NCBI GenBank assembly: GCA_030704615.1
Contig: CM060734.1
Coordinates: 25,048,001-25,112,000 of the forward strand
Reading direction: 5' to 3'
Source: Takakia lepidozioides
Lineage: Eukaryota; Plantae; Bryophyta
DNA length: 64,000 bases
Shown here: positions 7,052 through 40,278 of the stretch, piece by piece
Numbering within the stretch: position 1 is the first letter of the stretch
Layout: every line of letters begins with the position of its first letter
Notes under the pieces: generated by a model
Told to the model about the DNA's origin: nothing
What the model saw: the letters and a program-made list of their open reading frames with translations, nothing else
The model's database searches: none
Program-made: the position numbers and the translations under genes

Positions 7052-7449
7052 GCATGCAGGTGTGGAGGGGATCCAAGCACAAGAAAATCAAAACAGTAAC
7101 TCCCCCACACCAAAAACACTCCACCGTGTCGCTCCTGCAAGACACCCCAACCCAAACGTGGACTGACTCTTGCCTCCACCTACGGAAAGGTTTTGGCCTA
7201 CAGAGAGGGTGGAAGACTACAAAGAAGAGAGACTAAAGCAATTCCTATCACAGCATGCTCGCATCCCACTACCCTATCCTGCACTCCACAGTAATCAACT
7301 TTAAAAGTCCATGGCTTTCTGGTACATGATTGCTTTTGCAATCTAACAATTGGTACACATACCTATTGTAGTTAGAAACCCTATACCATATAAATTTAGA
7401 TGAAATATTGAGTTGTTGGACAAATATGGGTAAAACCATGGAGGGAGGT

Positions 7450-8317
7450 CACCAAATTCGGATAGCGGAAGGAGATGAGGAAAGACAGCGTGCAGGACAA
7501 GGTATGGTTCATACAAATTCCTGGTGATGCCTTTTGGGCTCACCAACGCGCCAACGACCTTTAGCACATTAATTAACAGCCTTTTCCAGGAGTGGTTAGA
7601 TGACTTTGTGATCGTGTACATCGACGCATCTTGGTGTACTTGAAAACAAAGGAAGACCACCTGGAGCACCTCAAAAGGGTGTTCCAGAAATTGCGGGAAG
7701 GCAAGCTCGGGGTCACAGAATTCGGGGTCACAAAAGTGGAGTTCCTAGGGCATGTGATTACATAGGATGGAATCAAAATGGATGACAGAAAGGTGAGGGC
7801 GATCTTGGACTGGGAACCTCCGACTTCGGTCCCGAGAGTGTGATCCCTTCTAAGACTCGCCTCCTACTACCGAAAGTATGCGAGGAATTTTGCCAAGATC
7901 GCGGGGCCGCTGTCAGACCTCTTGTGTAAATCCAAGGTATGGGTGTAGAACACCTTTTGTGGCCAAGCTTTTGCCGAATTGAAGCAGCGGATGGCGGAAG
8001 CCCCAGTTTTGAAGATCCCGGAGCTCAACCGTCCGTTTGAGATTCACACAAATGCGTCGGACTTCGCGATTGGGGGTGTGCTAATGCAAGAGGGGCGTCC
8101 AGTGGCTTACGAAAGTAAGAAACTGAACAAAGTGGAGCGACGGTGGCCTACGCATGAGAATGAAATGAAAGCGGTGGTGCACTGCCTGGAGCTTTGGCTC
8201 CACTATGTTGGTTCCAACCCGGTGAAGGTGTTCACGGACAATGTCACGGTGAAGCCAAAGCTCACCGTGACAAGACATTTTGGCATTGTTTGACGTGGAT
8301 ATTCAGTACAAGCCGGG
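7450..8317 (+). pseudogene. Chromovirus (Ty3/Gypsy) RT-RNase H fragment
   Basis: [34 protein letters not shown]; near-identical to the reverse complement of 36520-37390. Confidence 0.9.
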
Positions 8318-8398
8318 AGGTACATCCCCAAGAGATACAGCAAGCACATGAACTAACGAAATTGTGCGGACACAATTTCAAAAGAGGGGGGGAATAAA

Positions 8399-9269
8399 TG
8401 ATAACGGCTAAGCTACGAGGGCCAGACAACGAGGGTCACGACGGGACATACCGGATGGTGATTGGTGTACACTACCTGGTCACGGGCAGAAAAAGCTAAG
8501 TATGCGGTACTTAGCAAATGGCCGAACAATGGTACATTACCACGGGAGCAGTAGTGGGTAGTGTAGCAATCGTGGGCCGTGAACCACGATATCACACGGC
8601 CACGTTAGCATCGGCTTTTACTAATAGAGGAAGTAGTGGATCGTGTACCACTATGGTACACGACCACTACAACGAGCCACCTTTTTAGCAAACCCTTTAG
8701 GTTGCATAGGCGATTAGGCAAACGGTCATTAACGACTGCAGGCTGTAACGGCTCTTTCGAGCATAGTATAAAAGGGTTGCACGCAACTTAGAAGGTATCA
8801 GTGATCAGTGTGTATTCAGTGGACTCAGAGTGATTCGATGTGTACTTCTGCTATGATGTGATGAACTCTGAAGTAAAGCCATGCTATTCGAAGTATCTCT
8901 GTGTAGAGTGAACGTGAGATGGAGAGAATGTATATTATGAGATAATGTGAGATGGTGAGAATGTGTATCATCTCAGAATAGCTCTTGTTTTGTCTTGACT
9001 ACCATCTGATTGTATGAACAAAGAGGCTTCAGTCTTTCCGACTAAGATCTTTTAGGCCAATGAGACTGTAGGTTAGGCTTAATCAATAAGATTAAGCAAC
9101 ATGTAGAGATATTGATTCATACGACGGTCATGGTTTAGCTATCATTAAAATGATTACTTTGTAATCGTTTCTGAAAGCATACCATCGGACAACCTCTGTT
9201 GCATGTCTTGGGAAATGGGCAGTAGTGCTGAGAGCCTGTTTTGTCTAAGTCATAAACGAGCGGTTAACA
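8399..9269 (+). repeat. 871-bp LTR (3' LTR) of the non-chromoviral Gypsy family, preceded by a polypurine tract
   Basis: TG...CA ends (TGATAAC...GTTAACA); AAAAGAGGGGGGGAATAAA immediately upstream; inverted near-identical copy at 29215-30085. Confidence 0.92.
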
Positions 9270-9577
9270 GCCATCATGAAATCCATTGAGACACTCTCCC
9301 AAGACCCCTCTGGAATCGGCAAAGGTTGTAACAGCCCCGCTTGCTTTTTGTACTCGCTCTAGTTTTGCTGGCATGTGGTGCATGTCTTGACATACTCCTC
9401 GGCCTCCTCCCGAAGTTTGGGTCAGAAATACTCTTTCTTCAAGAGTGCCGCGGTGCGCTTGGCCCCGTCGTGGCCCGCAAGCGGGCTATCATGGCCTTCT
9501 CTCAAGAGACTATCTTTGAGCCCTCCCTTCGGCACGTAGAGACGTTTTTGCTTGTATCGGAGCAGTCCATTATGCAA
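9270..9577 (-). pseudogene. Chromovirus integrase N-terminal (H2C2) fragment, inverted relative to 7450-8317
   Basis: LHNGLLRYKQKRLYVPKGG...HDSPLAGH...CTTCQ...SMDFM; matches 36065-36370. Confidence 0.9.
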
Positions 9578-9720
9578 GGGGGTGCACTCCAGCCAATATG
9601 TACCAGCCACGTGCGTGCACAGGAGGGGGTATTTTAAACCCCTCCATGTACAACATTATACATATAGAGGGGGGTTTAAATCACCTTAAATATAATCTTA
9701 CAGGAGGGGGTAATTGAATT

Positions 9721-9820
9721 GTAGGAGTAGTCTAGTGGTAAGGACGTAGAATGTGTTGTGATGCACCGCGGGATCAAATCGCGATGCACTATTGTTTTGC
9801 TTTTCTTTTTTTTCTTTTCT
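9721..9820 (+). other. Degenerate tRNA-like / Pol III promoter-like motif with T-rich tail
   Basis: A-box TAGTCTAGTGG (9728-9738) in a D-arm GTCT..GGAC; B-box-like GGGATCAAATC (9770-9780) flanked by CGCG/CGCG; T runs follow; acceptor stem not intact. Confidence 0.45.
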
Positions 9821-11079
9821 CCCCGCGATCTGTCTCCCGTGGGCTCTCTTTTCCCTCCTCCCGCGCCCCTTCCGTGTCAGCTAGGTCTTAGCAGGCCATG
9901 TTTCAATCTCTGCTTTTTGGTGGGAAGCAGATGGTATTCAGAGAAATTTGTGAAGGGGCAATGGGAGAAGGAGGAATGCATGGTGGAATGGGAAGCATAT
10001 TATGCCTGTGTCTCGGTACTCTCCCTCTCTAGTTCTCAAAGTTTTCATCTCTTGGTACCTTTATCACAATTTCTAGTGGTTTTTATGTACACTTTGTTGG
10101 TTTATTGCACTATGAAATGTAGGGGTTTCATGTAGTTAATGGTTCCAGTAGTTGTGCTTGTGGCTTCACATGGGTGCCTGACATGCGCAGACCGTCACCT
10201 CACCAGCAGATGTCCATGTGTGCTTAGTTGAGGTGAATGGTGACGATGGCATCAGTGGTGGCGGGGATGCGATGGAGCGACAGTGAAGGTGTGGGGAGGC
10301 ATAGGCAGCTTACTCCTTTTGTTGTTCTTTGGACCTACTTTAGCAGGCTTCAGATTTTGGTGATGTATTTGTCTGCATGAACTACACATCTCCTGATTGT
10401 GTGTGCAATCTTCAGGTGGGCGCCATACTTGCTCTTTGAGCAAGGATTGTAGTCAACGAAATTACTTTCAAAGTACAAGTCCTGCAAGCCTCAAGACACC
10501 ATTTTATCTCTCTGTCTCAAGTGTCTCCTCTCCTGGATTCGAATATTCAATGAGAGATAATCTTAGAGCTAGTAGATAGATCAAGGCTGCTGTTTGTGGA
10601 AGCTTGAGGCCCCACCCCATAGCTGTGGCACACAAATGAGGAGGTATTTAGATCAATGTCTGTATTTTGGGTTGGTTTCCATGAGGCTACCTTATTGGGA
10701 GTCCTGGGTTCAAGTATTTGGAGGCCTCTGAGGAGTGACAGGTGTACAGTTTTCAGCCATTTACAGACATGTCATTGACCTTACCATCAAGCACCTAGAG
10801 CCTTGAAACTTGAGGTGGCACTGTAAGCCACCATGAAAAGTAACAATGTCCTCAGAAGAGACAGTAGCACTGACAATGTCGGCAAAGAATTGTGGCTCCC
10901 ATAACCTAGTCTCATTGTTCTCTTTTTCAATGTGATTTTCTCACTACATAAACACAGAAGCTGGATGACTTTGGACCTTCTATCGTTCTTATGGAGTAAC
11001 TTGGAAGGAATCATCGTGGAAAGATAAGCAGAAGTGTGGTCTAGTTGGAGCTATATTCTCAACCTCTGTGTTTTCTCTT

Positions 11080-14000
11080 CATGGGTAGATGGTCAACTGG
11101 AAACAATAGCGGCAGCAACGCATTGATAGAACAAGGCACTGCTAATGAAGGTACCTTCTTCAACGCATTTCAGCCTATTTTCCCTGTTAGTAGAGTCGTC
11201 CCTATTTTTTCATGTTGAATTCTGCAAGTTAGCTCGTTGGTGGATCTATGGTGGTTTTGGAGTGATTTTGTGCTCCCTGTACCTTCTTCTTCAACCTATT
11301 TCAGTCTGTTTTGCCCTCTCATCATTAGGGTTTAGGGTGTTTGCTGGAAGAACTTCATGCCATCAGTGTCAGCTGCTAGTAGCAAGGCTGAGGATGTATT
11401 CATGATTTGTCCACAGGCAGGGATAGCTGAGGACTAGGGATAGAGGTCCAGATTCATCCAAGAGGGCCGGATTTCAAACACAAGTTTATTTCTGCTTCCC
11501 TGTGGATCAATAGCTACAAGCAATCGCGCGGGTAGATGGTCAACTGGAAACATCAGCGGCAGCAGTGCAATTGATAGAACAAGGCGATGCTAATGAAGGT
11601 ACATTCTTCAACACATTTCAGCCTGTTTTTCCCTGTTATCAGAGTTTTTCCATGTTTTTGCCTGAAGGAGCAAGGATAGAGTGTGGGTCCAGATTCATCC
11701 ACGAGGGTTGGACTTCAAGCTCCAGATTACCTTGATTCCATGTGGGTCAGTAGCTACAAGAAACCTACATGGGTAGATGGTAAACTAAAGGCAGCTATTG
11801 CAGCGGCACAGATGATAAAATCAGGCACCTCAACCATGACCACAGCTTCTGAAAGAGGATCAAGAGAGGGAGTCCACAATGCCTCTTCTGACATTTCTGG
11901 GCATGTGAAGATACTTTGTGCGGCAGACAGCCTGACAGAGGCTCTACAGATTCTAAACCAAGGAGGCATTTTAGGAGATTCAAATATGTATGTTTGTCTC
12001 TTGCTTAAGTGCATCAAGATGGAAGGTCTCGAAAGCTGGAAAGCAGGTGCACACTCACTTTATCCAAAGTGGGTTCACGACAGATGTTTTTCTACTCAAC
12101 ACGTACCCTTGTCAATATGCATGTTAAGTGCCGAGCATCAAGGATGCTCACCAAGTGTTCAACAGAATGCCTCAATGATCTTTGATCACGTGGAATATTA
12201 CGTTGGAAAGATTTACCAAGCATAGGTGTCGTAGGAATGTTTTGGAGACATATGAGCAGACCTGTGCTTGCCTTCTTCAGGGATGTGCTAAAACGAAAGC
12301 TTTGGCAATTGGCAAGGGGGGTTCATGCCCACATTCTCAATAATGAATTCGAGCCAGACATTTTTGTTGGAAACACCCTTATTAGCATGTATTGCAAAGT
12401 GCGGGAGTGTGGTGCATGCACGCCAAGTGTTTGACAAAATGCCCAAACGCAATGTGATCTCATGGGCAAGATTAGCTCAGCAATGCCATGGTGCAGAACC
12501 ATTCGACCTCTTTCGACATATGCGACTAGAAGGAGTGAAACCTAACGAGGTTACATTTATTGGGATTCTCAATGCGTGCTCCCTCCCAGCAGCTCTGGAG
12601 CAGGGCAATTGGCTCCAGGCCTGCATCATTGTTGCTGGATTCTAGTGGGGAATGCCCATCTGAGCATGTATTGCAAGTGTGGGAGTGTGGCTAATGCGCT
12701 CCAAGTGTGTGATAAGATGCCTCGGAGAAATATAGTTTCATGGAATGCCTTGATTGCAGGATTAGTTCAGCAAGGGCAAGGTGCAGAAGCATTCAAACTC
12801 TTTGCACGCATGCAAGGAGAAGGTGTGAAGCCTGACAAGGCCACTTTCATTAACATCCTTACTGCTTGCACCAACCCTCTAGCTCTGGAATGGGGCAAGC
12901 TGCTCCATGCAAGCATCATCAAAGCTGCTTTGGTGTCAGATATCCAGGCGGGGAATGCCCTTGTGAGCATGTATTGCAAGTGCGGAAATGTGGTGCATGC
13001 CTGTCAAGTGTTTGACAAAATGCCTAAGAGAAATGTGATCTCATGGAATGCGATGATTGCAGGATTAACATAGCAAGGGCATGGTGAGGAGGCGTTCAAA
13101 CTTTTTCAGCAAATGCAACGAGAAGGTATGGAGCCAAATGAAAATCACCTTCATGAGCATCTTGAACGCATGTACTACCCCAATAGCCTTGGAACAGGGC
13201 AAGGGCCTCCATGCAGGGTTGATCAAAACTGGATTTGAGTCGGATGGCAAAGTGGGAACTGCCCTTCTCAGCATGTATTGCAAATGTGGGAGTGTGTTGA
13301 TGCTCAGCAAGTGTTCATCAAAATGCCCGAACGAAATGATCTGATGAAGGTACCTTCTTCAACACATTTCAGCCTGAGGGCACCTTCTAGTTTGACATGT
13401 TTCAGCCTGTTTTTCCTCTCATCAGACTCAGCCCTGAAGCATATGTATTGAATTCTGTAAGTTAGCTCGTTGGGTGGATCTGCGGTGCTTTGGAGTGACT
13501 TTGCAAGTTACTGCCAAGGTGACAGCATGACAGTACCTAAAAAAAGATAACAGAGATGGAGAGAAGCTTTCAAGGAATGAATACTTCTCTTACCCCAATC
13601 AGTGGTGGGACAATGTGAGTAGATGGTCAACTGGAAATAGCAGCGGCAACAGCGCAATTGATAGAACAAGGGACTGCTAATGAAGGTACATTCTTCAACA
13701 CATTTCAGCCTGTTTTTCCCTGTTATCAGAGTCGTCCCTAAATTTCTAGATGGCCGGATTCCAAGCTCCAGATTACCTATGACTCCATGTGGAAGGATAG
13801 CTACAAGAAACCTGCATGGGTAGATGGTCAACTGGAAGCCACTGTAGCAGCTGCAGAGGCATGATGTACGCATTGTTAGTGTGGAGGGAGGGGTAGCTGT
13901 TGATATAGAGAGAGGATCGTGGGTGCAAAATCATCCAAGAGGGCCAGATTTGGAGCAAGGAACAGCGCTGGCAGGAGCTCTATAAATATGATCCACAACG

Positions 14001-14260
14001 GTGGAACAATATTGTCAACAAGGTGAGCTTTCTTCATGCAACATCGTAGGGAGTTTGACAGAACTTTGTATTTAAATATGTTAGTGTGGAGGGAGGACTA
14101 GCCGCTAATGCAAGGATGGACTGTGGGTTCAGGATCACCCAAGAGGGCTACCAGCAGTGGAAGTAGCAACATTTGGTCAATAGCAGCAGCAAGAATTAGC
14201 AATGTCAAACTCATCAATCAGGTACTTGCTTCTGTATACATTTCATCCTCTTATCAACGT
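11080..14260 (+). repeat. Array of degenerate exon/intron-like repeat units inside the transposon
   Basis: Repeated GGGTAGATGGTCAACTGGAA (about 11082, 11530, 11771, 13618, 13818) and AATGAAG|GTAC(C/A)TTCTTCAACACATTTCAGCC donor-like junctions. Confidence 0.8.
11829..13341 (+). pseudogene. Captured, frameshifted PLS-class pentatricopeptide repeat (PPR) gene fragment
   Basis: Repeated GNALVSMYCKCG...QVFDKMPKRNVISWNAMIAG...EAFKLF..MQ.EGVKP...TF..IL.AC triplets in ORFs 12325-13344; several stops and frameshifts; no E/DYW domain seen. Confidence 0.92.
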
Positions 14261-14380
14261 AGTCCATGCTTGGACAGCCTATAGGGTTGTATAAAACAGG
14301 ACTTTGGAACCTTCCAACCCGGGTGCTTTGTTATTGGTCTATCAAGGTCTGATTTGAAATGTTTTCATTGCATTTTGCAG

Positions 14381-17300
14381 GTGAACTCATCATGGAAGAA
14401 GAGTTGGAAGTAAAAGTCCTGCTCGTTGGAGGAGATGCATCACCAAACAGGCTTGGTTCTATGTTCACTATGCAAGGTGTCACATACAAATGCATCCGAG
14501 CAGAAATTATAGGTGATGAGCTTGTCTCAGCAAAATTTCATTTCATTTCCATGGGGGGTAGTGTCTTTTCAGCCAAGCAAGAAGAGAGGATGGTTCTGAA
14601 ATGGGATACTGTACACATTAAGATTTCAGACCAAAATGATGGGGACCAAGGATTGAAAAGACCTCTATCTTCCAGTGGTTCTACGATCTTGCATGAGGAC
14701 AGACCAGGCGAGGACCCGGCACCAGTGTCTACCAAGATGAGGATGGACCCTGATACACCCTTTGCTGGCGATGGTGGAAATGAAGACCATGCACATGAGC
14801 ATGCACTTCAGCAGAGATCTGATAGATTGTGCAGCACGTTGGCTACATCCAACGATATTCAAAAATGGCATAAAGAGATTAGAGCCGTTGAAAGGAAAAT
14901 CTCTGCAGAAGGACGATGTGACAAGTTTGAGCTGATGACAAAGGATCAACAAGGACAAGCAATGTTCCACATATGGTGTGTTGAGTGTGAGGATGTTTAT
15001 GCACGGTCTGGGAAAAACAAACCATATGATGCATGTGCAAACTTTATGAGATCTCATTTGAGGAGTGAGGGGCATCGCATAGCCTATGAGAGGCGTCATG
15101 GGAAGGGTTCATCACAATGTGTCATCAGCCCTGTAAATGCAGATGAAGCATTAGATGCAAAGAAGAACAGGGTGAAGGAGGTATTAGAGGAAGTCGCTCG
15201 GTTTTGTGAGGACAATCCTGGAAACAGATTTGAGATTGTGGAAGCCACAATTGGAGACTATTCGCAGTTGGGTTCCATAAGGATTAGGTGCCCACTTGAT
15301 TCAAAGTGGCTACTCTTGTTTCCAAGGACAGGTTCTTTGCAATCTTCTTTGACAGAGCATGTGAAAGGAAAAACTCATGTCGATGCAGAGATTTGCCAGA
15401 AGATTGGAAGTAGTGAAGGACTGTGCAAAAAGAGAGGAAGGCCTCCAAAGCCTATGATTGCCAAAGATGTAAAGCAACGGGATCTAAGCTCTTTCTTGGT
15501 CAGTCAACCTGTGTTGCCGTCCCCACCACTTGACAATCCAATTGTGGCATCAACAATGGGAGCATCCTCGTCACAAACTCCATACACTTGTGTTGACGCT
15601 GCCCAACGGGCAGATCTGATCGAGGATTGACAATTACAGCAAAGGTCCCAATGCAACAAAGGAAGAGACAGTTTGTGTTGGGGCCTATGGGATGAATGGT
15701 GGGAGTACAACCAGCAGAGAATAAGTCTGAAACCATTCCTTCAAGATAGCAAGGGAGGAAAGAAGTGGTATGTCGAGCCATTGACAAATGCAACCATCAC
15801 TCTAACCAATCAAGAGCATAAGGTTGTTGGTACGTTTCGGCACGTGGATTGTTTTAGAGTGTCATTGGATGGGGAGCCATTTCCAAACTTGAGATGTTCA
15901 GCATGTTCTTCCATTCCCTTGGAAAATGACTTCACAATGAGGGTATATAGAGAAAGAGGTGCCATGGAATGTAGAGGGGAGAGAGATACTGGCAAGGGAA
16001 GAAGGTTGTCATATCTTGGAAATGCCGAGATTGTCAAACAAGTTTACAAAAACAGATAGGAGTTGAGACAGTTGAGGAGGCCAAGACCAAAGTGGCATCC
16101 TTGTCTGTGCGATGTAGGAGTTTGAAGGAGTCTGGGATTGAGGCAATTGAAAGAGGAGATGTTCTCAAATTTTGTCGTGATATTGTTGATGCACATAGGA
16201 GGGGGGATTTTGAAGGAAAAGAAAGTTTGTGGGATTTTCTTGTTGATATGGGCAAGAATATTGACAGGTCTCCACAAGGGAAGAGGTATGGTACTAGCAC
16301 AAAAACAATGTTTGAGACTGTGCAGCTTTGGGGGGGTCCGAGATTGCATCATTTTTTGGCTTCAAATGTGGGGGGTCCTTCTATTGATACTACAAGACGG
16401 TCTTTGAGGAAAGGTTTGAAGTACAGAGCGGGACAAATGGATGATATATTTCAGCATGTGGCTGGAATTTACAGAGATGTGATGGAAGATGCAAATATTC
16501 CAATGGGAAGCATCCCAGTGATGGTGGCCGAAGATGAAACTGTTGTGAAGCGATTGGTACGTTGGATTGCTAGGGATGATACCCTTCTCGGGTTCTGTGG
16601 GCTTCAAGACAACCATGTATGAATTTCAAATTTTGTGGTGCAAGTGGGAGAAGGGGAATCAGGGTACGAACATATTGTGGAGGCATTCAAAAACAATGTG
16701 GTTGCCCATTACGCCAGAGTGTTGATAGCAAATCCTCTACATGTACGATTACCTCGATTGGTATTGGTAATCCAGCTCACTTGCAATAGATTTGACAACA
16801 ATTTTGTGAGATCACAATGGGAAGTGGTGAGACAGTTGTGGGACAAATATGTGAGGGACGTGATTGGGCCTATAATTGGGCATGCTTCAGACGGAGATAG
16901 TAGGAGGAGAAAAGTGATGTTAGAAGATTATGCCAATGGGGCTGGAAGTAGATTTTGCATCCCTTGGGAAGGATGGTTGTTTACAGGTCGAGTGTGCAAC
17001 GGGGGAGATATATACGGACTCCATGATCAGGACTTCATCCACAATGGGAAAAAATTGGTAAATCCCTTGGACAGTGCATCACGGACTTTGGTGTTGGGTG
17101 ATGAGGTTGCTACATTGAATCATGTGTTATTGGTCTACCATTCATTTTCAGTGGACAAGCATGGACTTCGGGAATGTGATATCAAAAGAGAAGATCGACA
17201 GAATTGGGCAACAGCTCAACGACTGGCATCTCGGAAGATGCAAGCTTGTTTGAGGGAGTTACAATCAACTGTGAATCATCGAAGGGAGAGGACCAAAGGT

Positions 17301-18790
17301 ACTGAAATTTACCTATACATCATTTCATGCTACATCGACATTTTTTTGTCTCCTCACATGTCATTGTGTGAGAGGGTACAATCTGCTGCGAAGGTATCGT
17401 TTTTTTCAGATTGTGGAAGTTGTGGTTATTCCACCACGAGGTGTATAATCTGAAATCCTTCTTCATTAGCAGGGAAGCATACTTGGATTTACAAATTTCA
17501 TGCCACTACGTGGTTCTACTTATCAAATTGTTCAAGGATAAGTTTAATCATGTGCAAGTTCCTTTGAGCCTTGTTGGTTCAGATGTGTGTGAAATATTCT
17601 TCAGCAAAGTGGGAGGTATGTTACGGAATGAGAGGACATATAATGGGTGTGATTTGATTGAGAGTGCGGGAGCATTAACACGCATATCCGAGTTCGAGGT
17701 GAATCCAAAAGGACCCAAGTTCTCAAGAGCTCACAAGAAACAAGAACACATTTGGTTTTCTTTGGAGAAGAAGCCAAGTATCCCCCTTGCTGATTTGTCC
17801 GACTTTTCTACTGTCCAATCGGATGATTGCATTGTGGAGGCTTTGAAAACTAGATTTCTAGAAGCGCAACTTTTATGCCATAAACTTGGGATGAAACCAA
17901 ACAAAGCGACAAACTTGGATTGGTGGAATGAGCCATGGACAATTGAGAGACAAATGGAGGCCGAGCTATTCAAAAGCATGGAAGAGGAGGGTGATGATGT
18001 CGATGCCATATATTCTATTTGTCCTCTTAATGCAGACACACATATTCAAAATGAGGTCGTGGAAGATGAATTGGTGTGCGGGCCATCGAATTCAATGGAG
18101 GATGTTTTGAGCCAACCTTTGGATGATCATGCGGAAGAGGTACTTATTCAGAGTGAATTGAGACATACTCTGGATGCTGTCATTGATGAGTTTGAACAAG
18201 AGAAAGATGGACCGAAGGCGGTGGTTCCATTTGTCAAAGTAGACGAGAAGACCATATTCAAAAGCACTTTGGTTAGCCAACTCAATGGCAACCCTACTCT
18301 ATCCAAGGATAGATTGACACGAGTAAGAAGTGCATCGATGTTGTTTTGCCGAGAAAACAAACCAACTACCAGCAACAAAACCACGAGCTTGGGATTGGGT
18401 TCGGATTGTGCTGTATTTTTTGTTGATGAGGAGACTGCGATCCAAACTACAAACAGGAAAGGCAGACCAGGGAAAACCTGCAGAGGAGCAACCAAAGGCA
18501 CTTGGTATTTGGGCAGGGTTCAAAGAATGCGGAAGAAAATCAATAAGCGGTTTGTAGAATGTAGGAATTCTGTTGATTTATTGGAGCGTCATTCTCATAT
18601 GGAGATTGGGTTAGCATGGTACCAAAAAATTCGAGGAGGGGTCTATACGTACGATTTGACGGATAACATGATGGTTGATTTGGATTCCATTATCGCGTTA
18701 GCATGTTTAAAGTACAATGTCAAGTCAAACACATATGTACTTGATGCAAATGACCGAAAAGTCTTTGACAACTTTATCAAAGGCAAATAA
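14381..18790 (+). pseudogene. P-element-like transposase (about 1450 codons), disrupted by 2 stops and 2 frameshifts
   Basis: Splice acceptor TTTTGCAG at 14380; Cys/His finger-like motifs; AT-hook KKRGRPPK; RNase H-like core AEDET (16533), ASDGD (16890), QDFIHNGKKLVN (DxxH, 17031), DRQNWATA, GSDVCEIFFS (17591); stops at 15628 and 16620, frameshifts near 16040 and 17400. Confidence 0.75.
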
Positions 18791-19079
18791 TTTTTTAATT
18801 AATTTTTTATATTTTAAATGAATAAATTCGATATAATATAAAAACATACATATACATATTGGAGGGTTATTTTTAATGATGGAAAATGAGAATATACATA
18901 CAGAAGGGGGTACTTTTTAAAAATTGTAAATTTTTGTATATTTACAGGAGGGGGTTTTATAATCTTCAAAAAATATGTACAGAGGGGGTATAAATTATCC
19001 AAGGACCCGTATACAGGGGGTTTTTTTTATTAGGCGACGAACGCACGTGATACGCACAGTTTATAAAGAGTGCACCCCC

Positions 19080-22035
19080 AAGGGGGATGTAGGGTGGTGG
19101 CATGCCTGTCTGCTGGGTAGGAAGTGCGTCCCAGGATTGTCGTGGTGGCATTTTCTTGTTTCTGTTGTCATTACTGTCTGGTTGCTCCTGTGGTCCGTGA
19201 GTGGGCCAGCTTTCGTCATCAGGGTGTTCTGTTATTCCGTCCCCACGTACCATGTCGATTTTGGTGGTCAAGGTTTCTCGGTAGGTTTGCAGCTCCTCCT
19301 TGGTCCAGGGTATAATGTTTTTAGTTGCCCTGCTGCCCATTAACCAGTTAACAGCTTGCGTCCCTGTTTCTCTGAAAGGGTGGTCTCTGTCCAAGACCAA
19401 TGGTGAAAAGTGGTCTTTCGCCTGGCGCCATGCTTCAGCATATAGTGGTCTGTTCATATATGCTGAAGTGCCTGCGACTCTCTCTGGTGGCTGGAATTTG
19501 GGTAATTCCCAGTGAGTATCTTTTTCAATACTCTCATAGCGCTGCCAGCTTCCCCTCATTGTCACGAACATCCAATACAAGTAACTTCCAATATAAAAAC
19601 TTAGGCAGCCCATTACAACGTCTACTGCCGGGGTAGGATTAATCTTCAATTGCCCCACTGCCCACATGTAAGCGACCAGCTCCTTGTACTCCAGGGGAGC
19701 CTGACGCCAGAATTCAACCAATTCTGCCCCTGACCATGTCTCCTCCCTAGCCAATGGCCTCATCCTGTATCTCAAAGGTATGAGAGTTTGATTGAGCAGA
19801 TGCAATTGACCCAATGACCTGCAGGGGGTTAAGGTTTTGAATACCTTTTCTAGTATTTCTGGGATTTGGTGGGCTGGGACTACCATCATTTTAAAGTATT
19901 CCTCTGAATACTTTAGCCACTCCCCATCCTGCTTGCATGGCATGATTTGGAAATCATCCACTGCTACCGAAGTTGATGCCACCAGAACACTTGGTAATGG
20001 TACGGGGTTTACCTCTTGAGTAGATGGCCCTGCTGTGGCCTGTATCAGTGCCTGTTGACTTTTGTGGTGGTTGTGTTGTTGGTGGTGTTTGTGCTGGTGT
20101 TGTTGTTGTTGTTGATTGTATTGGTGCTTCTTGTTCATGGTCTTGCTCCTCTTAATCGTCTTCGTCCATGAGCTCATCTTGTTTGGAATTGGTGGCAGAA
20201 ATTCCTCGTGAATGTCTGTCACCAATTTCGCCAATTGACATTTCATTTGTCTTACCATTTCCCTGTTGAGTTTCTTCATTTCCAGTTCACTCCCTTCACT
20301 CAACCAGGCTCTAGCAAAGGCTGCGTCTGCTGCGTCCAGCCCTGCTTGCAATGTCAGCTTCTCCAGCTGTTTGTTTCCATTCTTGTTCATTGCCCATGGC
20401 AATGTCTCTTTCTGTGGTGACTGTGAATAGCCTGCTTTCAGCATTTTCCCTTCCCCTCAGCAGTACAGTGTTGCATGAGAAACACTTGCTTCCCTGGTCT
20501 TTGGCAGTCTTCAGCTGCCCCTTGAGTGTATCCACCTGCTCCTTAAGTGTCTGGACCTGTCCTGTGAGCATTTCCACCTTTGTCTCTGTTTTCCAAGATC
20601 GTTCTCTTTCTGCATCGAGGTCGGCTTGGACATGGCATTTTTCGTCTCTCTGTCTTTGCCACTTCTGTTCCCACTCGTCTCTGCGTTGTATCAAAGTGTT
20701 GTATTGGCGAAGTAAGGTCGTCTTTTGATCTTCCAATGATGCGATTGTAACCTCGTGGTTACATACTGTTCTTGCTGCCGCCAATTCCCTCTGATGTTTC
20801 TCTTTGATGTGGTCCAAGATCATGCTAAGGTTCTCCGGGCTTATGTAATCCTTGGCCCTGTCCATGCAAGCTCTTACTTGACCCAATGCTTGTTTCTTCC
20901 AAACCTGTGTCCCATGCTGTTGTATCCAGAACCTATTGTGCGAGTAGTAATTCCAAATTGGAATTATTGTCTTGCTGCTGCTGACTCTGTGCCTCTTGCA
21001 CCACCTGCTGTTGCTGCTGACTGTGTGTCTCTTGCACCACTTGCTGTTGTTGCGCCACTATGGTTCCCTCCTCTGTTCCTGGTTGTGTGGCCTCTACAGG
21101 TGTTGTTTGCTGGGTTTCGGTGTCAACATGGCTCATTTCCATGGGTGTTGCTTCATTGGTCTGTGGTTGGTTCCCTCCTTCTGGCTGTTGATTCTTTCTT
21201 TCTCTTTGTAGTGTGGAATCAGCCGTCAAGTTGAAGATGTCCTCTGCTACTGCACTTGTGGTTGCTTCGTTGATCCGGGCTCTCTTTGCAAGTCCGCCCT
21301 CTTCTTCTTCTTGACCTGCTGCTGTGTCGATTCCTTCTTCCTCCATCGTTTCTACCCGCTGCATGATTCCCAACGTCGTTTTCTCTTTTGGTGTCAAGTG
21401 TACAGTGTGTCGAATCATTTGGAGTAACAAGGGAGTAGCCATGGTAACAGTCGCTTCCTTCTTCTTCTTTGTCAACCGGGTCAATTCTTGGGTTAACTTC
21501 TTCAATAAGAAGCTTGCCCAATTCATGATTTGCCCATTGAGGCAAATCAACACTTGATCGATTAGCTCCTTGGTGCAGTGGCTGTGGTTTTGCCTAAGGC
21601 AAAACAACGTGCTAAGTACCGGGGCTATCTTCTTAAAGCCGGGGTTTTTGCTGTGACTGCATTTGTAGCCCTGATCGGCTTGGTTGAGATTCTCAAACAA
21701 GTCCGCAAGTACAAACCTTGGAGGTTTGCCGCTGTGCACCAGTACGTCCAGACTGGGAAGGTGAAACACTTCCGCCAAGTACTTCTCTGTCAATAGAATC
21801 TGTGTGTCACGGACATTTGTGCTTCGAGTGCTGGTGTTGTAATTTTCCAAGAATTCCCTGCACAGCTCGTCGTGCTTAAGGTCCAGTCCAGCGTGGTGAT
21901 GAAGTACCGCAGGCCAAGACTATCCAATGTCTCCTGTGTCTCTGTGTCCTGCTCGATTTTCCGCAACGCCGGGCTGATTTTGAAATTCACTTGCGCATAA
22001 GAACTTGGTGCCTTCCGCTTGATGCCTGCCATTTC
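19080..22035 (-). pseudogene. Accessory 3' ORF(s) of the Gypsy element (env-position; plant-mobile-domain-like, coiled-coil and Q-rich)
   Basis: MAGIKRKAP...LDSLGLRYF, ORFs 20933-21850, 20311-20886 and 18966-20444 downstream of integrase on the sense strand. Confidence 0.6.
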
Positions 22036-29214: not shown

Positions 29215-30085
29215 TGTTAACTGCCGGTTTATGACTTAGACAAAACAGGCTCTTAGCACTACTACCCATTTCCCAAGACATACAACGGAGGTTGTCCGAC
29301 GGTATGCTTTCAGAAACGATTACAAAGTAATCGTTTTAAGGATAGCTAAACCATGGCCGTCGTATGAATCAATATATCTACATGTTGCTTAATCCTATTG
29401 ATTAAGCCTAACCTACAGTCTCATTGGCCTAAAAGATCTTAGTCGGAAAGACTGAAGCCTCTTTGTTCATACAATCAGATGGTAGTCAAGACAAAACAAG
29501 AGCTATTATGAGATGATACACATTCTCACCATCTCACATTATCTCATAATATACATTCTCTCCATCTCACGTTCACTCTACACAGAGATACTTCGAATAG
29601 CATGGCTTTACTTCAGAGTTCATCACATCATAGCAGAAGTACACATCGAATCACTCTGAGTCCACTGAATACACACTGATCACTGATACCTTCTAAGTTG
29701 CGTGCAGCCCTTTTATACTATGCTCGAAAGAGCCGTTACAGCCTGCAGTCGTTAATGACCGTTTGCCTAACTGCCTACGCAACCTAAAGGGTTTGCTAAA
29801 AAATTGGCTCGTTGTAGTGGTCGTATGCCATAGTGGTACATGGTCCACTACTTCCTCTATTAGTAAAAGCCGATGCTAACATGGCCGTGTGATATCGTGG
29901 TTCACGGCCCACGATTGCTACACTACCCACTACTGCTCCCGTGTTAATGTACCATTGTTCCGCCATTTGCTAAGTACCGCGTACTTAGCCTTTTCTGCCC
30001 GTGACCAGGTAGTGTACACCAATCACCACTCGGTATGTCCCGTCGTGACCCTCGCTGTCTGACCCTTATAGCTTAGCCGTTATCA
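29215..30085 (-). repeat. 5' LTR (871 bp) of the non-chromoviral Gypsy element
   Basis: Reverse complement of 8399-9269 (about 95-97% identical by eye); TG...CA ends; followed by PBS. Confidence 0.93.
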
Positions 30086-31790
30086 GATACTACCAATGTG
30101 ACAACAGGAAAGTATCCAGAAATAGGTAACAGCTGAGACGAGGAGAAGCTGTGGAATGAATACTTTTCTGACCCCAGTCAATGGTGGGACAATCGAGGCA
30201 AGAAGGTGAATGTCTGTTGGATTATAGAGAGTAGTAGATGCGAACAAGTGTGATAAGTTGAGTTGGGTGTTTCCTAGAACAAATCTAGGTTGTCATCGTC
30301 AGCTGCTAGCAGCAAGACAAATATGTATGCATGATTTGTGCAAAGGCATGGATAGCTGAAGGAGCAGGGAGATAGTGTGGGTGCAGATTCACCCAAGAGG
30401 GCCGGACTTCAAGCTCCAAAAGGTGAGTGCAGGATCAGGTGGCTCAAAAACGGCAGATGTGACCTCCACGAAAGTCCCTGGGCAAATATTTAATCTATGT
30501 TTTTTGTTCAAATATATTTTTACATTGATAGATAATGATATGCCTAACATTGTTAGTAAAGGGATCCATCATAAATATTTGAGATATGTTTTATTAGAAA
30601 TATTATTCCATAATTTAAAAAATAACTAATTTGTAGGTCCCCAATTATATAGGACATTTGTCGATCTAGTTATAAGAACTTGTAGATAATGACAATATTT
30701 ATATTGTCATTGAAGAGTTCTACCCAAATATGATTTTTTTGAACACCATGAGCTTTTGAAATTTTGGGTATATCTAGCGATATGTAAAAGTTCATAGTAC
30801 ACTAACAAATGAATGAAATTGTCTACAAGTTCATCCATGTCTCTTATTCCTCAAAGGTAATCTATAATCGAAGTCCATATGTAAAATGGCTAAGTGCAAG
30901 TTAGTGTTTGAGAGTCCAATTATGGACAAACTTGGAATGTTATAGCCGAGAGTGCAAGTCCTAAAAAGTCCATAGCTCCATGATAAATCATCTAACTTGC
31001 AAAATAATCATACCAACATGTAGATATGGTAGATGATTAGCAACATTCAATCTCATTTGGGATGAAGATAAACTTATTTGCACAGTGTTACAGATAATAT
31101 GAAGAGCACTCAATGAAAAACTGCAGTGTGACGTCCAAACTGAGCCACCTTAGCCTGCCTCACCCCAGATTAACTATGATTCCATGTGGATCAATAGCTA
31201 CAAGAAACCTGCATGGGTAGATGGTCAACTGGCAGGCGCAGCGCACAATTGATAAAATCAGACACTGCTAATGAAGGCATCTTCTTCAGTACATTTCACC
31301 CTGTTTTTTCCCTCTTATCAGAAATTTCCATGTTGAATTCTGCAAGTGAGCTGGTTGAGTGATCTAGTTTGGAGTGACTTTGACATGATACTGCCAATGT
31401 GACAATAGGAAAGTATCAAAAAACAAGTAACAGAGATGAGGAGAAGCTGTGGAATGAATACTTTTTTGACCCCAGTCAATGATGGGACAACCGAGGCAAA
31501 AAAATGAATACCTGTTGGATTATAGAGAGTAACAAACGCAATTCAACATAGGAACTAGTGTGATAAGCTGAGTTGGGTGTTTCCTAGAACAAATATAGGC
31601 TGTCATTGTCAGCTATTAGCAGCAAGGCAAGGATGAATGCATGTGTTGTGCAGAGGGATGGATAGCTGAAGGAGGCCTGATAGAGTGTGGGTCCAGATTC
31701 ATCCAAGAGGGCCAAATTTCAAGCACACGATTACCTATGATTCCCTGTGGATCAATAGCTACAAGAAACCTGCATGGGTAGATGGTCTAT
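30086..31790 (+). repeat. About 1.7 tandem copies of the ~555-bp exon/intron-like repeat, interrupted by a MITE-like element
   Basis: GATACT(A/G)CCAATGTGACAA at 30086 and 31387; same motifs as at 2085-2570 and 11.1-13.9 kb. Confidence 0.85.
30422..31164. mobile_element. Non-autonomous AT-rich TIR element (MITE-like, ~743 bp)
   Basis: Imperfect inverted termini GGTGAGTGCAGGATCAGGTGGCTCA / TGAGCCACCTTAGCCTGCCTCACC; interrupts the repeat at TTCAAGCTCCA|GATT; no ORF. Confidence 0.75.
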
Positions 31791-33375
31791 TTCGTGGGAC
31801 TCAATCTGTCACTAAAGTCTTGCATTATGAGGATCAGAAATGCTTGGCAGCTTACCTGCATGAGGCCTTGACCCTTAGGCAATCCCCAGAGCAGCAGTAG
31901 CTTTTGGGCTACTTTTGTACTTTGGTCTTGTCTCATCTCTCTTGTTTTTTTCCATTTTGTCCCATAAGCTCTTTGAGCTTTCCGCACAGGTAATAAAGTA
32001 CCATTTTGTTTCATTTCATTTCGTTTTGTTTCATGGCATGTCTTTCATCGATTTCGCAATTCTAATGACATGATTAATTCTCTTGTATGGCATTACATAC
32101 GTATGTACTAGTCGGCTCACTACAAACACCAAAACTTCAAAGCATAAACCACTATGAATGATTGTTCAAGTAATTTCGAGCAATTCATTTAAAGTAGTAA
32201 ACCAGTGGTTGCGCCGACTTCCGCAGTCGCAGTTGCCATTGGGCATGTAGCACTGCAAATTATGTGGTCGACTACCACGTGGCAGCAGTGCTGCTCGTCG
32301 TGGCACCGCCACATCGGTGTCCACGTCGGCATCCACGTCCGCGTCCATGTGTCACCGCGGTCCGGTGAGTCATTCCACTCATGCGAAGGGGAAAGTCAAA
32401 GTCAGCCCAAAAGGTCAGACACACGGACGGCTCGCCTGGTTACGCCACATGGTTCTTCAGCAATAATCGTTGAGCAGTCGTTCATGCGTTTGCATCCGTT
32501 ACCACTTCTATCATTGGATGTCCGATCCAACTTCCATGTCTGTTGTAACTAGTCGTTTACTAATTCCAGTGGATCCCGGTTTTTTGACTTTTTCGACTCA
32601 AAGTGAGTCGTTTCCCGAGTCGTAAAGGACGGATTTTCTTCTAGTGGGTTACTCGGTCTGCTATTTCAAACGAGGTTAGCTCCCTCTGGCTCATGCAGCT
32701 TTGCTGTCATGGCCGTGAGCTCGACTCTTGTCCCCCCCTTTGGCTTCCTCCTGAACTAGTAGGCTTACTTAGACTCCTCCGTCTTGCTGGTTTCTACCTT
32801 CGCCTTCTTGGGATAGTGTCTCTCATTTCCTTCAGGTACATGTGGTACGTAACTAGGTTGGTGAGCGAGCGGTGTCATTCCCCTCAAATGAGCGCTCTCA
32901 GCTCCTGTTGAACCCACACTCCTGGTCGTAGACTTGTCTCCATAGGGTTAGCGTCCAACAGTACCCCTTCCTCTGGTTCTATCCTCAGAACCCTTTGTTC
33001 TTGGCCAAACAAGACCTCCAATTCCCTCCATCACGGGGCTTAACCCATAGCACGTCAATTGGGAGGTAACACAGTACGTATGTCTCTCCGAAATATGGGT
33101 GCTAACAATGCTCAGTATGCGACAAACACTCCTTGTGGATGAAGCAAATGAAATGAATATGTATTATTGGCGTTAGTGCATAATTCACTGCAGGAGCACC
33201 TCTCGCCGCCGCTCCCACAACATCAATCCGTCCACGTTGATCACTCGGTGTCGCAAGTACCAAGTCTTGGAACCTCCGTGTCGCGCACCTCACTTCGGTA
33301 AACTCCCCTTCAAGTCATAGTTACTCGCTTTGATGTACGCCTAACTCCCAAACTGGCCGTCGAGCTAACTCGGAG

Positions 33376-36300
33376 TGTCGCGCACCTCACTTCGATAAGC
33401 TCCCCTTCAAGTCATAGTTACTCGCTTTGATGCGCGCGCCTGACTCCCAACCTGGCCGCCCGGGCCAACTTGGAGCTTCGGCTGCTCACCGGGACATAAC
33501 GGTCCCCCTTCGCTTCCCACTAAACCCTCCACCTATTTGGGACTAGGAGAATTCCCTTTGGTAGATGGCAGTCCGGAACAACTCCCCACTCTTTGGTCGC
33601 TTTCCGGCTCGCTCGCTTACTCACTAGTTTTTGGTCACCAACGGGCTTGCACCGTTCTCGGGGTCACTATTCCCCTTATATATACTTCTGTAGCTGTCCG
33701 CGGGGGTTTCACAACCAGCCATGCCATTTTATGGCGAACCACCACGAAAACCCTCGACTCCCGGTGATGAGTCGCGGTGAGTCTTGGCCCACTCACTACG
33801 GCCCCTATGGACCGTGATGAGTCCCAAGACTCCCCACGACTCCCACCACGAGGTCTCCGCCCCCATGGTGAGTCCTATGCCACCCCCACTAAGTCCCGCT
33901 AAGCTACCACCACCCCTTGTGGAGCCACCCCCACCGCAACCCGGTGTGTGGGGCTCCACCTAGTGAGCGCCTCCGCCTCCTTGGGTGCCTTGGGCACTCA
34001 AGGGTGCTTCAGCCCCCCATACCTATCGCTGCCGCTGCCCCCACCACAGGGGCAACCCCTCATGTGTCCCGACCCCCTTGCCCTCAAGGCAAAGGGCCGC
34101 GACACACACCCCTACCAACAGGGAGTCGATGTCCTCATCGACTTGTTCATTTTGTAGAAACGAACATCCAAGTTGTGGCGTCCCACATCAAGGAGTTTGT
34201 TTCCGTACCATGGCGTCCCATGGCAAAGAACCAAACCCCACACTTGACTCTACTCTCCACTAGCTAGTTCGGCCGACTTCCTCCAAGTCCCGGCCAAAGG
34301 TGGAGCCTCTCCAGCTCCTCCCAGTGCACTCTTCTTGGCCTACTTCAAGGCCAAGGAACGATCCTCCCCGAGGATCGAATCGCCTTACTGCAACAACATT
34401 GCTTGCGACTGCTCGTGATGCCGCTTTGGGCATCACCTTGAGCAAGGGTTCACCTGAACCTCTTTGACTAGGAAGATAACCTTGAACCAACCGTGCGCCC
34501 CAATCACTACAATTGGGTCCGCCTTGGAATGCTGGCCTGAGGTACGGGAACATGTCGAAGCCGCACTACGACTTCGTCCCGAGGCTACACGATTATAGTA
34601 CGTGAACGGAAGCACGTAGCTTCCGCGTTAGCCCGCACTACAAGGCAACCACCTCGGTAGCGCAGTTATAGTACGCGCACGCGACAGGTGCGCACTAGCA
34701 CGTGAACTCCCAAAGAAGGCGCATGTTTCTTTGCCCCTTGGATGGGAGTCACCCGGTTTCGGCACTGCGCAAACACACGATTAACCCAATTTACCTCTCC
34801 CACTTTTGTAAGCTAGCATGCATTCTACACACTAGCCAACCACACCATGCATCACCATTCCAAACACAATAGGACGCACAATATTTGGAACCCATTTCCT
34901 TTATAACAAATTTTTGTACAATACAAGTTTTTGCAATCGGATTCCTGAGCTAGTTAAACCGGGCTAAGCATGCATTTCCTCCCCCACGCTCCAAGGTTGA
35001 TGTCCCCATCAATGTTTCTTCCGCTTTTGAGGTCGCCCTTCGAACGCGCAAACTGCCTCCTCGGATGCGTTTCCCATTTCTGAGGCACGCACCCAAGATG
35101 CCTCCACATGATGATAGCCCTTCCATTTCACGAGATACTCCGTTTCTCAGTTCTTGAACCTCCTCGACTTAAGTACTGCCTCCACCTCGTACTCAGGTTC
35201 ATTTTCATGATCCAATAGCATAGGTGGCGGACGCAACACTTGATGCCGATTCGGACGCGCTTCATCTTTGAAGTAAGGCTTCAAAAGGGATACATGGAAT
35301 ACTGGGTGCACCTTACTGTTTGCCGGCAGCTCCAATTCATACACATCCTCATTCATAACCTTCCGAATGCGAAAGGGTCCCGCATACGGAGGTACGAACT
35401 TCGGACTCACTTCCGGAGGTAGTCGGAAATTCTTGATGTTCAACCAGACCTCTGTGCCTGCCTCAAACTTCACTTCCCTCCGCTTCTGATTCGCCTGCCT
35501 TTCATATTGTTTCCTAGCTTTGGCAATATTGTACTTTGCGAGCTTCAACAAACGCTCGCGTTCTTCCAGTACCTCCGCTACTGCCGGTTCCTCAACGTCC
35601 TGGGCGGCCCAACTTGTCGGCACCAGAGGTGCTTTTCCATAGACCAATACGAAAGGGGAAACTCTCCGCTGCGGAGTGTTTGTGTTATTATAACAGAACT
35701 CTGCCGCGTCTAAGTGTTCCATCCAGTCTGATTGGTCTGCCGACACGTAATTCCGCAAGAATTGCTTCACTACGGAATTCACTCTTTCCGTTTGGCCGTC
35801 CGTCGTAGGTCGGAAGGCGGTGCTCATCTTCAGCCTCGTCCCCATCTTCTTCCAAAGTGTCCTCCAAAATTTACTGGTAAACTTTGGATCGCGGTCCGAG
35901 ACAATATCCTTAGGGACTCCATGATGCTTTAAGACGTTGGCAAAGTAAAGTCGCCCTGTCTCCTGCGCCGTTGCCGTCTCCTTGGTGGGGATGAAATGGC
36001 CCATTTTACTGAACCTATCCACCACCACCATGATTGCATCGAATCCTTTTGACAGCGGCATAGCAGTCATGAAATCCATCGAGACGCTTTCCCAAGTCCC
36101 CTCTGGAATCGGCAAGGGTTGTAACAGCCCCGCTTGCTTTTTGTACTCGCTCCGGTTTTGTTGGCATGTGGTGCATGTCTTGACATACTCCTCTGCCTCC
36201 TCCCTCAGTTTGGGCCAGAAATACTCTTTCTTCAAGAGTGCCGCAGTGCGCTTGGCTCCGCCGTGGCCCGCAAGCGGGCTATCATGGCATTCTCTCAAGA

Positions 36301-39300: not shown

Positions 39301-40278
39301 CATCTGTTGGTCTGACGGAGCTCTCATGGATTCCTCGGGCTCCGACTCCTCGGATTCCTCCCGCTCTTGAGCGGCCTAGTTTTCAGAAACCTGCGTCGCT
39401 TCCTCAAACGGCCGCGCTTCGGTGACACGTCGCCCCCATCGGGCTCACCAGGATCATCATCTTTTGGGCCGTTCCGCTTTCGCTTTGGCTTGCCCGACCC
39501 CATGATGAGGCCAATCCCAAGGACGATCGCGTACTGAACTCTAAGTTCTGATACCAAGTGTCGCGCACCTCACTTCGATAAGCTCCCCTTCAAGTCATAG
39601 TTACTCGCTTTGATGCGCGCGCCTGACTCCCAACCTGGCCGCCCTGGCCAACTTGGAGCTTCGGCTGCTCACCGGGACATAACGGTCCCCCTTCGCTTCC
39701 CACTAAACCCTCCACCTATTTGGGACTAGGAGAATTCCCTTTGGTAGATGGCAGTCCGGAACAACTCCCCACTCTTTGGTCGCTTTCCGGCTCGCTCGCT
39801 ACTCACTAGTTTTTGGTCACCAACGGGCTTGCACCGTTCTCGGGGTCACTACTCCCCTTATATACTTCTGTAGCTGTCCGCGGGTTTCACAACCAGCCAT
39901 GCCATTTTATGGCGAACCACCACGAAAACCCTCGACTCCCGTGATGAGTCGCGGTGAGTCTTGGCCCACTCACTACGGCCCCTATGGACCGTGATGAGTC
40001 CCAAGACTCCCCACGACTCCCACCACGAGGTCTCCGCCCCCATGGTGAGTCCTATGCCATCCCCACTAAGTCCCGCTAAGCTACCACCACCCCTTGTGGA
40101 GCCACCCCCACCGCACCCCGGTGTGTGGGGCTCCACCTAGTGAGCACCTCCGCCTCCTGGGTGCCTTGGGCACTCAAGGGGCTTCAGCCCCCCATACCTA
40201 TCGCTGCTGCTGCCCCCCACCACAGGGGCACCCCTCATGTGTCCCGACCCCCTTGCCCTCAAGGCAAAGGGCCGCGCA
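33376..40278 (-). mobile_element. Near full-length chromovirus (Ty3/Gypsy) LTR retrotransposon
   Basis: LTRs 33376-34104 and 39559-40278 (TGTCGCG...CGCGACA); PBS TGGTATCAGAAC (tRNA-iMet type); PPT-like GGTAGGGGTGTG; 5-bp TSD CGGAG/CGAAG; gag, CFNCGEPGHMAKKC, LVDTGASHSF, YIDD, RNase H, integrase, chromodomain. Confidence 0.95.
35010..39500 (-). pseudogene. gag-pol with C-terminal chromodomain
   Basis: ORFs 38753-39127, 38426-38749, 37821-38282, 37032-37319, 35147-37060; after the TGA at 35147 the frame continues EYLVKWKGYHHVEASW (chromodomain, preceded by EYEVEAVL). Confidence 0.92.

Follow-up and report, generated by a model that had tools for sequence, protein, structure and literature searches.

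What kind of element lies at positions 9578-19082 of a 64-kb stretch of the Takakia lepidozioides genome (contig CM060734.1; the whole stretch of 64,000 nucleotides is called the window below)? The 9.5-kb element carries a long, broken gene for a DDE transposase, and a first-pass annotation, made from the letters alone, had assigned it to an undescribed plant family of the P superfamily. A 2022 review of land plants lists six superfamilies of terminal inverted repeat elements (Tc1-Mariner, hAT, Sola, MuDR, PIF-Harbinger, and CACTA), P not being among them (PMC9033089). According to a survey of fungi, the fungal P entries of Repbase come from Pucciniales and Allomyces only (PMC5751038), and plants go unmentioned in a 2026 survey of THAP9-like RNase H domains. 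We found no literature on P or Kolobok elements in bryophytes, ferns, or lycophytes, and the family did appear undescribed in the literature searched, Repbase and Dfam lying outside that search. Our reading, to which we give a probability of about 0.88, is that this is a P-superfamily DNA transposon of the cut-and-paste type, present as a dead copy and belonging to a transposon lineage that occurs in seed-free land plants.

The core of the ~1,470 amino acid (aa) transposase was shown by structure prediction to be built like that of Drosophila P transposase, with a helix-turn-helix (HTH) domain, a split RNase H domain, and an all-helical insertion domain. AlphaFold2 was run on a 1,015-aa family member, P0085, using a 108-row alignment that included the pieces of the window's gene; the model has a predicted local distance difference test score (pLDDT) of 85.5 and a predicted template modeling (TM) score (pTM) of 0.80, and is helical over residues 493-634. 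The window's gene matches the modeled protein in a profile search at E 3.8e-141, and its pieces align to modeled residues around all of the catalytic motifs. In a Foldseek comparison with the PDB, the best match was the Drosophila P transposase strand-transfer complex (6p5a_A; E 2.6e-8, TM 0.68 by target), followed by RAG1 (1.3e-3), HzTransib (1.8e-3), and Hermes (1.3e-2). VIA-align superimposed residues 182-686 of the model on residues 134-566 of 6p5a_A with a Z score of 25.2 (412/442 residues, 4.7 Å), the match spanning the HTH, the split RNase H domain, and the all-helical insertion domain, which lies between beta5 and alpha4 with the HTH upstream, as in P transposase. The other chains scored far lower: HzTransib 11.6, RAG1 at most 10.6, and Hermes at most 8.0 (chains 7.6-8.0). 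In the ESM Atlas, the models closest to ours are of Basidiomycota proteins that carry no annotation (TM 0.77-0.79 by row), and the next clusters, from rotifers, echinoderms, and arthropods, carry PF21787, PF21788, PF21789, or PF12017. The P assignment was thus upheld by a wide structural margin over Transib/RAG and hAT and by Atlas neighbors with TNP-like/THAP9 domains.

The motifs quoted in support of that assignment were all found, in the order reported, within a transposase frame of 1,466 codons (14392-18790, + strand; ~1450 codons had been estimated). On this strand, the first catalytic Asp lies in AEDET (16527-16541) and the second in SDGD (16887-16898); DQDFIHNGKK (17025-17054) and DRQNWATA (17193-17216) follow, and the catalytic Glu lies in SDVCEIFFS (17579-17605). 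The D/D/E columns of this triad on an RNase H-like fold are present in the window and invariant in 40 long family members, in which the fixed columns are D-E (AEDET), D-G (SDGD), D..H...K, and the E of GSDxCE. The corresponding residues of P transposase are D230, D303, and E531, and the Drosophila residues in contact with guanosine triphosphate (GTP) are D528, K385, K400, V401, S409, F443, D444, and N447 (PMC7776569). In the plant family, too, an Asp precedes the catalytic Glu by three residues (SDVCE), and there is a conserved DRQN motif.

A word-based search with the last of the five pieces into which the gene is broken returned 77 proteins; those with a named source, all "hypothetical," come only from a fern, Adiantum nelumboides, and a liverwort, Riccia sorocarpa. 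When a profile was run against 1.84 billion representatives (a 50%-identity library), it yielded 3,586 proteins at E ≤ 0.001, 511 of them at ≤ 1e-30; many were full-length matches of 1,000-1,140 aa on metagenome contigs of ~5 kb. Three of the Adiantum nelumboides gene models (P0014, P0041, and P0055) consist of transposase fragments fused to P450, retrotransposon gag, or PPR domains and are likely annotation chimeras arising from an unrecognized transposon family.

Relatives with homologous termini show how the family inserts: insertion duplicates 8 bp of the target, as seen at five insertions (L002, L005, L006, L007, and L008), which supplies the duplication length that the first-pass annotation wished to see defined from independent loci. 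The family ends consist of CTCGGGGGGTGCACT, ~18 nt, and CACGTGCG. L002, an element of 6.75 kb with ends CTCGGGGGG(G/T)GCACT, has the window's 18-nt spacer and CACGTGCG at its right end and is flanked by a perfect duplication, GTTTCAAT; among 316 chance 12-mer inverted pairs, only 0.005 would be expected to have an exact 8-bp repeat. L006 (8.2 kb) has the perfect duplication GAATAGTC, and L005 (8.6 kb) has TCTCCCTT and TCTCCTTT, which match at 7/8 positions. The remaining two, L007 and L008, are 7.74-kb copies in opposite orientation ~50 kb apart on one contig (ENA ERZ25073694, ctg132431); they are 99.86% identical and code for one and the same intact protein of 1,423 aa. The flanks of the two are reciprocal (GCTTTGAG, element, TGTAAAGG and TGTAAAGG, element, GCTTTGAG), so that undoing an inversion restores two original perfect 8-bp duplications; either the intervening segment was inverted by recombination between the copies, or the assembly was flipped at the inverted repeats. 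The four complete elements all have a GGGT(A/G)T site at a distance of 50-54 nt from their left tip. L001, L003, and L004 yielded no full pair of ends; a right end of the same design is kept in L001 and L004.

The window copy has recognizable ends of this kind, with terminal inverted repeats and subterminal repeats. Its left terminal signal (9578-9616, + strand) consists of GGGGGTGCACTC, an 18-nt spacer, and CACGTGCGT; the right one (19041-19082, - strand) is an inverted copy of this two-part motif plus an outer CAAG. The combination of 12 + 9 nt, GGGGGTGCACTC-N18-CACGTGCGT, occurs once per strand in the whole 64 kb (9578-9616 and 19041-19079), at the two element ends alone, and each half is likewise unique per strand. 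The inverted termini reported earlier are therefore real, with two amendments. By comparison with relatives, the right end reaches 19082, not 19079, and reads ...CCCCCAAG, derived from CGAG; the consensus-based end of the copy is ...GTGCACCCCCAAG, in which CGAG became CAAG by a CpG transition. The left tip is incomplete, the outermost CTC(G) of the family consensus having been lost. GGGGT-type repeats, ACAG(G/A)AGGGGGT, lie within ~150-200 nt of both ends, all on the + strand. On the left, ACAGGAGGGGGT-type repeats at 9619-9714 (9619, about 9665, and 9700; the first ~50 nt from the end, as in L002, L005, and L006) are candidate transposase-binding sites. Those on the right, ACAG(A/G)AGGGGGT at 18900-19030 (18900, 18944, 18979, and about 19011), are in direct orientation relative to the left-end ones because all are on the + strand.

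Could the core belong to Kolobok, or to another superfamily with no solved structure, and merely resemble P transposase? The Pfam P models stay below threshold, and the comparison was made with neither a Kolobok structure nor a Kolobok profile, which leaves room for such an assignment; we nevertheless regard it as very unlikely, given five insertions with 8-bp duplications of unrelated sequence rather than the TTAA of Kolobok, the Z score of 25 against P over the HTH, RNase H, and insertion domains, and the TNP-like Pfam domains of the ESM Atlas neighbors. An element like hAT, or like Transib/RAG, is less probable still. The plant family does share with hAT (Ac, Hermes) the 8-bp duplications, N-terminal zinc fingers (CxxC..H..H here, often BED-type in hAT), and a D/CxxH motif after the second Asp, and Transib and RAG1 are the second-best structural matches. 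However, the insertion domain and the overall fold match P (25.2) far better than Hermes (≤ 8) or Transib (11.6), and neither the hAT dimerization domain (PF05699) nor BED was matched in Pfam even at E 10; Transib, in addition, makes 5-bp duplications. Neither the CTCGGGGGG... termini nor the 8-bp duplications fit CACTA/EnSpm, which has CACTA termini and 3-bp duplications. The first-pass annotation had named a best match to hAT, MULE, or CACTA as the outcome that would overturn it, and P transposase tops the structure comparison.

It had also named the lack of any copy linking these termini to this open reading frame (ORF); independent loci do pair homologous termini with homologous ORFs and 8-bp duplications. 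The same loci bear on whether the gene is a transposase-derived host gene and not a mobile element, a view that the thousands of family representatives and the gene models fused to host domains might encourage. Against it speak the inverted termini and 8-bp duplications, the existence of near-identical copies and of derivatives with internal deletions, and the inactivating mutations of the window copy; we consider it the least probable of these explanations.

Several observations weigh against placing the element in the P superfamily. The family has no THAP domain, the N-terminal zinc finger of the animal P clade. No Pfam P-family model (PF12017, PF21787, PF21788, or PF21789) reaches its gathering score, and profile searches against PDB sequences gave no match. 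Identity to P transposase in the structural alignment is just 12-14%, and the protein that was folded is a relative with ~39% core identity rather than the broken product of the window's gene. Around the window copy, no target-site duplication is visible, and its left tip departs from the consensus. Kolobok, having no solved structure, was set aside by the type of target duplication alone. That the protein binds GTP, that its fingers bind DNA, and that its C-terminal barrel reads chromatin are predictions only. With regard to the first two points, the THAP domain and the Pfam thresholds describe the animal clade of the superfamily, and, according to a review, THAP domains occur only in animals (PMC7776569). 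The Pfam models miss the plant family because its identity to P is so low: the five ORF pieces matched no Pfam family, and phmmer with the pieces against PDB sequences found nothing significant. Below threshold, PF12017 (Tnp_P_element, the HTH) was seen in 2/40 members (6.4e-5) and PF21787 (TNP-like_RNaseH_N) at 2.6e-4 (21.7 bits vs. a cutoff of 24.6); the intact 1,423- and 1,530-aa proteins contain no P-family Pfam domain. The missing duplication and the damaged left tip of the window copy fit a later rearrangement. The missing duplication would fit recombination between copies, to which the swapped flanks of L007 and L008 also point within this family.

The gene itself is broken into five open stretches: 14359-15627 and 15673-16056 in frame 1, 16092-16619 and 16635-17450 in frame 0, and 17411-18787 in frame 2. 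As had been reported, two stops (15628-15630 and 16620-16622) and two frameshifts (near 16075 and at 17399) separate them, and these are mutations and not introns because intact homologues align with the five pieces in order and show no gap where one piece passes into the next. Each piece was searched on its own, and restoration of the frame was judged from indel lengths alone. The first piece (14392-15627, + strand, as are all five) encodes an N-terminal domain, two fingers, and an AT-hook and ends at the first stop; the second (15673-16056) encodes a conserved Cys-rich region (CWGxW, FRHxxC, and CxxC) and is followed at ~16075 by a 13-nt deletion. The region matching the HTH of P transposase and AEDET are in the third piece (16092-16619), which ends at the second stop, and the fourth (16635-17405) carries SDGD, DQDxxHNGKK, and the start of the helical insertion domain (DRQNWATA) before a 1-nt deletion in the T-run at 17399 ends it. 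The fifth (17411-18790) supplies the rest of the insertion domain, SDVCE, a linker, and a C-terminal BAH-like beta-barrel (about 18440-18787). Given the two stops, the deletions of 13 nt and 1 nt, and the damage to its left tip, the window copy can neither move nor make enzyme.

Other copies in the same organism were sought among the contigs of three DNA runs of "organism A" (one of which is labeled plant metagenome), placed on 13600-19500 with ~1-3% of letters different; the runs are stored as contigs, and depth is therefore not copy number. Other copies have 13 extra nt after 16075, which puts the downstream frame back in register, and some have an extra T after 17399, giving KVSFFFRLWKLW, the family consensus (KVSFFFRLW). 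Joints 13957>18698 and 14522>18607 indicate internally deleted derivatives, and the bin containing the right terminus is 3-5x deeper than the element body. A single contig, from a presumed RNA run, skips 14222-14380 (+ strand) at GT..AG, which suggests that the transposase gene is expressed. This intron lies in the 5' leader, and the exon ahead of it contains a stop at six codons from the donor; translation thus probably starts at 14392 and not at 14359, the start given earlier.

The N-terminal region differs from that of P transposase in other ways than its lack of THAP. Alignment of the window copy with intact relatives gives the order: a domain of ~80 aa, finger 1, finger 2, an AT-hook, and a further Cys-rich region. 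Finger 1 follows the pattern CxxC ... NLFxNFxxSHLxSxxH (CxxC at 14974-15000 and HxxxxxH at 15043-15075), and finger 2 follows RCxLD....LCP ... HVxGxxH (15283-15378), its second Cys being lost in the window copy. The AT-hook reads KKRGRPPKP in the window (15427-15453) and GKRGRP in the alignment. The first-pass annotation was right both on the fingers and AT-hook, which are conserved in relatives, and on the missing THAP domain: THAP, BED, and every other Pfam family went unmatched in the N-terminus even at E 10, for the window's pieces and for intact relatives including the 1,423- and 1,530-aa proteins. The N-terminal model is poor overall (pLDDT 50), with the fingers placed as beta-beta-alpha modules at pLDDT 70-86, and had no match to the PDB at E 0.001 or better. 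The first ~80 residues (L005:7036-7300; window 14392-14640) form a conserved domain with weak ubiquitin-like or PB1-like matches (Foldseek probability ~0.9 at low pLDDT), which could be an oligomerization module in place of the leucine zipper of P.

At the other end of the protein, the earlier description as beta-rich held, and its likeness to SH3/Tudor gave way to a structural resemblance to BAH or chromo-barrel domains. The last ~110 residues of the model, to which the window's C-terminus aligns, match the BAH domains of EBS (Z 8.0) and then SHL, AIPP3, DNMT1 BAH1, and ZMET2, with 80-90 residues aligned at ~3 Å and Foldseek probabilities of 0.98-0.99 for AIPP3 (7cce) and DNMT1 BAH1 (7lmm); Pfam gave no match to this domain. 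Because a Z score near 8 may reflect merely a common arrangement, a chromatin-reading role is only a hypothesis.

Drosophila P, vertebrate THAP9, and zebrafish P-like elements share with the plant family the HTH, an RNase H domain split by an all-helical insertion, a C-terminal region, a DDE triad whose Glu is preceded at three residues by an Asp, 8-bp duplications, short terminal inverted repeats with subterminal repeats, and internally deleted derivatives (PMC7776569). Unlike them, the plant family has no THAP domain; it has instead two CxxC..HxxxxH fingers, an AT-hook, and another region rich in Cys, and it also has a C-terminal BAH-like barrel, G-rich two-part termini, and land-plant hosts. 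At ~1,470 aa, its protein compares with the 751 aa of Drosophila P transposase. Fungal P-type elements are possible kin, the nearest ESM Atlas structures being those of Basidiomycota proteins that could represent fungal P families of Repbase; these proteins lack the ~420-aa N-terminal extension of the plant lineage.

By analogy with the family, the DDE active site would cut the target in a stagger 8 bp apart, and the HTH would bind the terminal repeat. The N-terminal CxxC..HxxxxH fingers and AT-hook may take the place of the animal THAP domain, binding the GGGGT-type subterminal repeats and their A/T-rich surroundings. The insertion domain may bind a GTP cofactor as in P, the Asp at Glu-3 resembling D528 before E531, and the BAH-like barrel might, speculatively, tether the enzyme to chromatin. 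A bolder account, which we consider doubtful, is that of a plant-specific P clade that swapped THAP for BED-like fingers and an AT-hook, gained a BAH-like reader of histone marks that steers integration, and has in its 1,423-aa member a possibly active enzyme; if true, this would be a transposase native to plants and possibly dependent on GTP.

No second copy of the element is present in the window, whose repeats nevertheless bear on its flanks. On the left, the flank at 9274-9577 shares 92% identity with a stretch of retrotransposon at 36067-36374, and retrotransposon homology extends right up to the G-run (~9578) because an uninterrupted copy reads GCAAG/TGGAAC, the slash marking the junction. 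Compared at the DNA and protein levels, the right flank (19083 onward) is not a continuation of the retrotransposon interrupted on the left. A 4-bp CAAG at both junctions was rejected as a duplication: on the right it is what decay has left of the CGAG tip of the element, and on the left it is part of the host retrotransposon. A single inversion as the cause of the flanks was likewise dropped, as the retrotransposon pieces differ (83% vs. 92% identity), a 0.87-kb unrelated repeat lies between them, and ~150 bp are missing. That repeat pair, 8399-9269 and 29215-30085 (871 bp, 96% identical, inverted), sits exactly between differently oriented pieces of one retrotransposon family (7449-8318 and 9274-9577), which makes the neighborhood a mosaic of rearranged repeats. 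A direct repeat pair at 33374-34101 and 39557-40276 (729 bp, 97.8% identity, ~6 kb apart, with a further ~80% copy at 40282-40975) probably represents the long terminal repeats of a GC-rich retrotransposon whose pol matches the transposon's left flank. On the right, a 492-aa ORF with a Gln/His-rich tract (18966-20444, - strand) extends from the flank into the transposon, of which it covers the final ~115 bp; it had no Pfam match and no similarity elsewhere in the window.

Within the element, the block at 11080-13990 (+ strand) is absent upstream of the transposase in L001, and tblastx of window 9578-14400 against that relative found nothing in common; we take the block to be nested or captured DNA, outside the element proper. 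It contains fragments of a PLS-type PPR gene (11683-13344; an N-terminal region and several PPR motifs, with frameshifts; Pfam E 5.5e-28), which could stem from a host gene of which a part was captured or became nested here. They are bracketed by copies of a high-copy repeat (11080-11830 and 13400-13990), the repeat being ~100x deeper than the element in the sequencing runs. At 13600-13990 (related to 11080-11830, 2121-2577, and 30086-31790), a depth ~100x that of the transposon body was seen in all four runs, with numerous loose ends and back-joints; this looks like a very abundant short element or a conserved segment of a gene family.

The window copy is thus a dead, rearranged member of a THAP-less plant lineage of P-type transposons, a family found in ferns, liverworts, and Takakia lepidozioides. 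With this family, bryophytes and ferns join the hosts of the P superfamily, and a P-type core would be able to work with a DNA-binding head other than THAP. Because no Pfam model reaches threshold, domain-based annotation would leave the family unclassified or call it a host gene. If the swapped flanks of L007 and L008 are not an assembly flip, they record recombination between copies reshaping plant chromosomes. The intact members are candidates for asking whether GTP dependence is ancestral to the superfamily.

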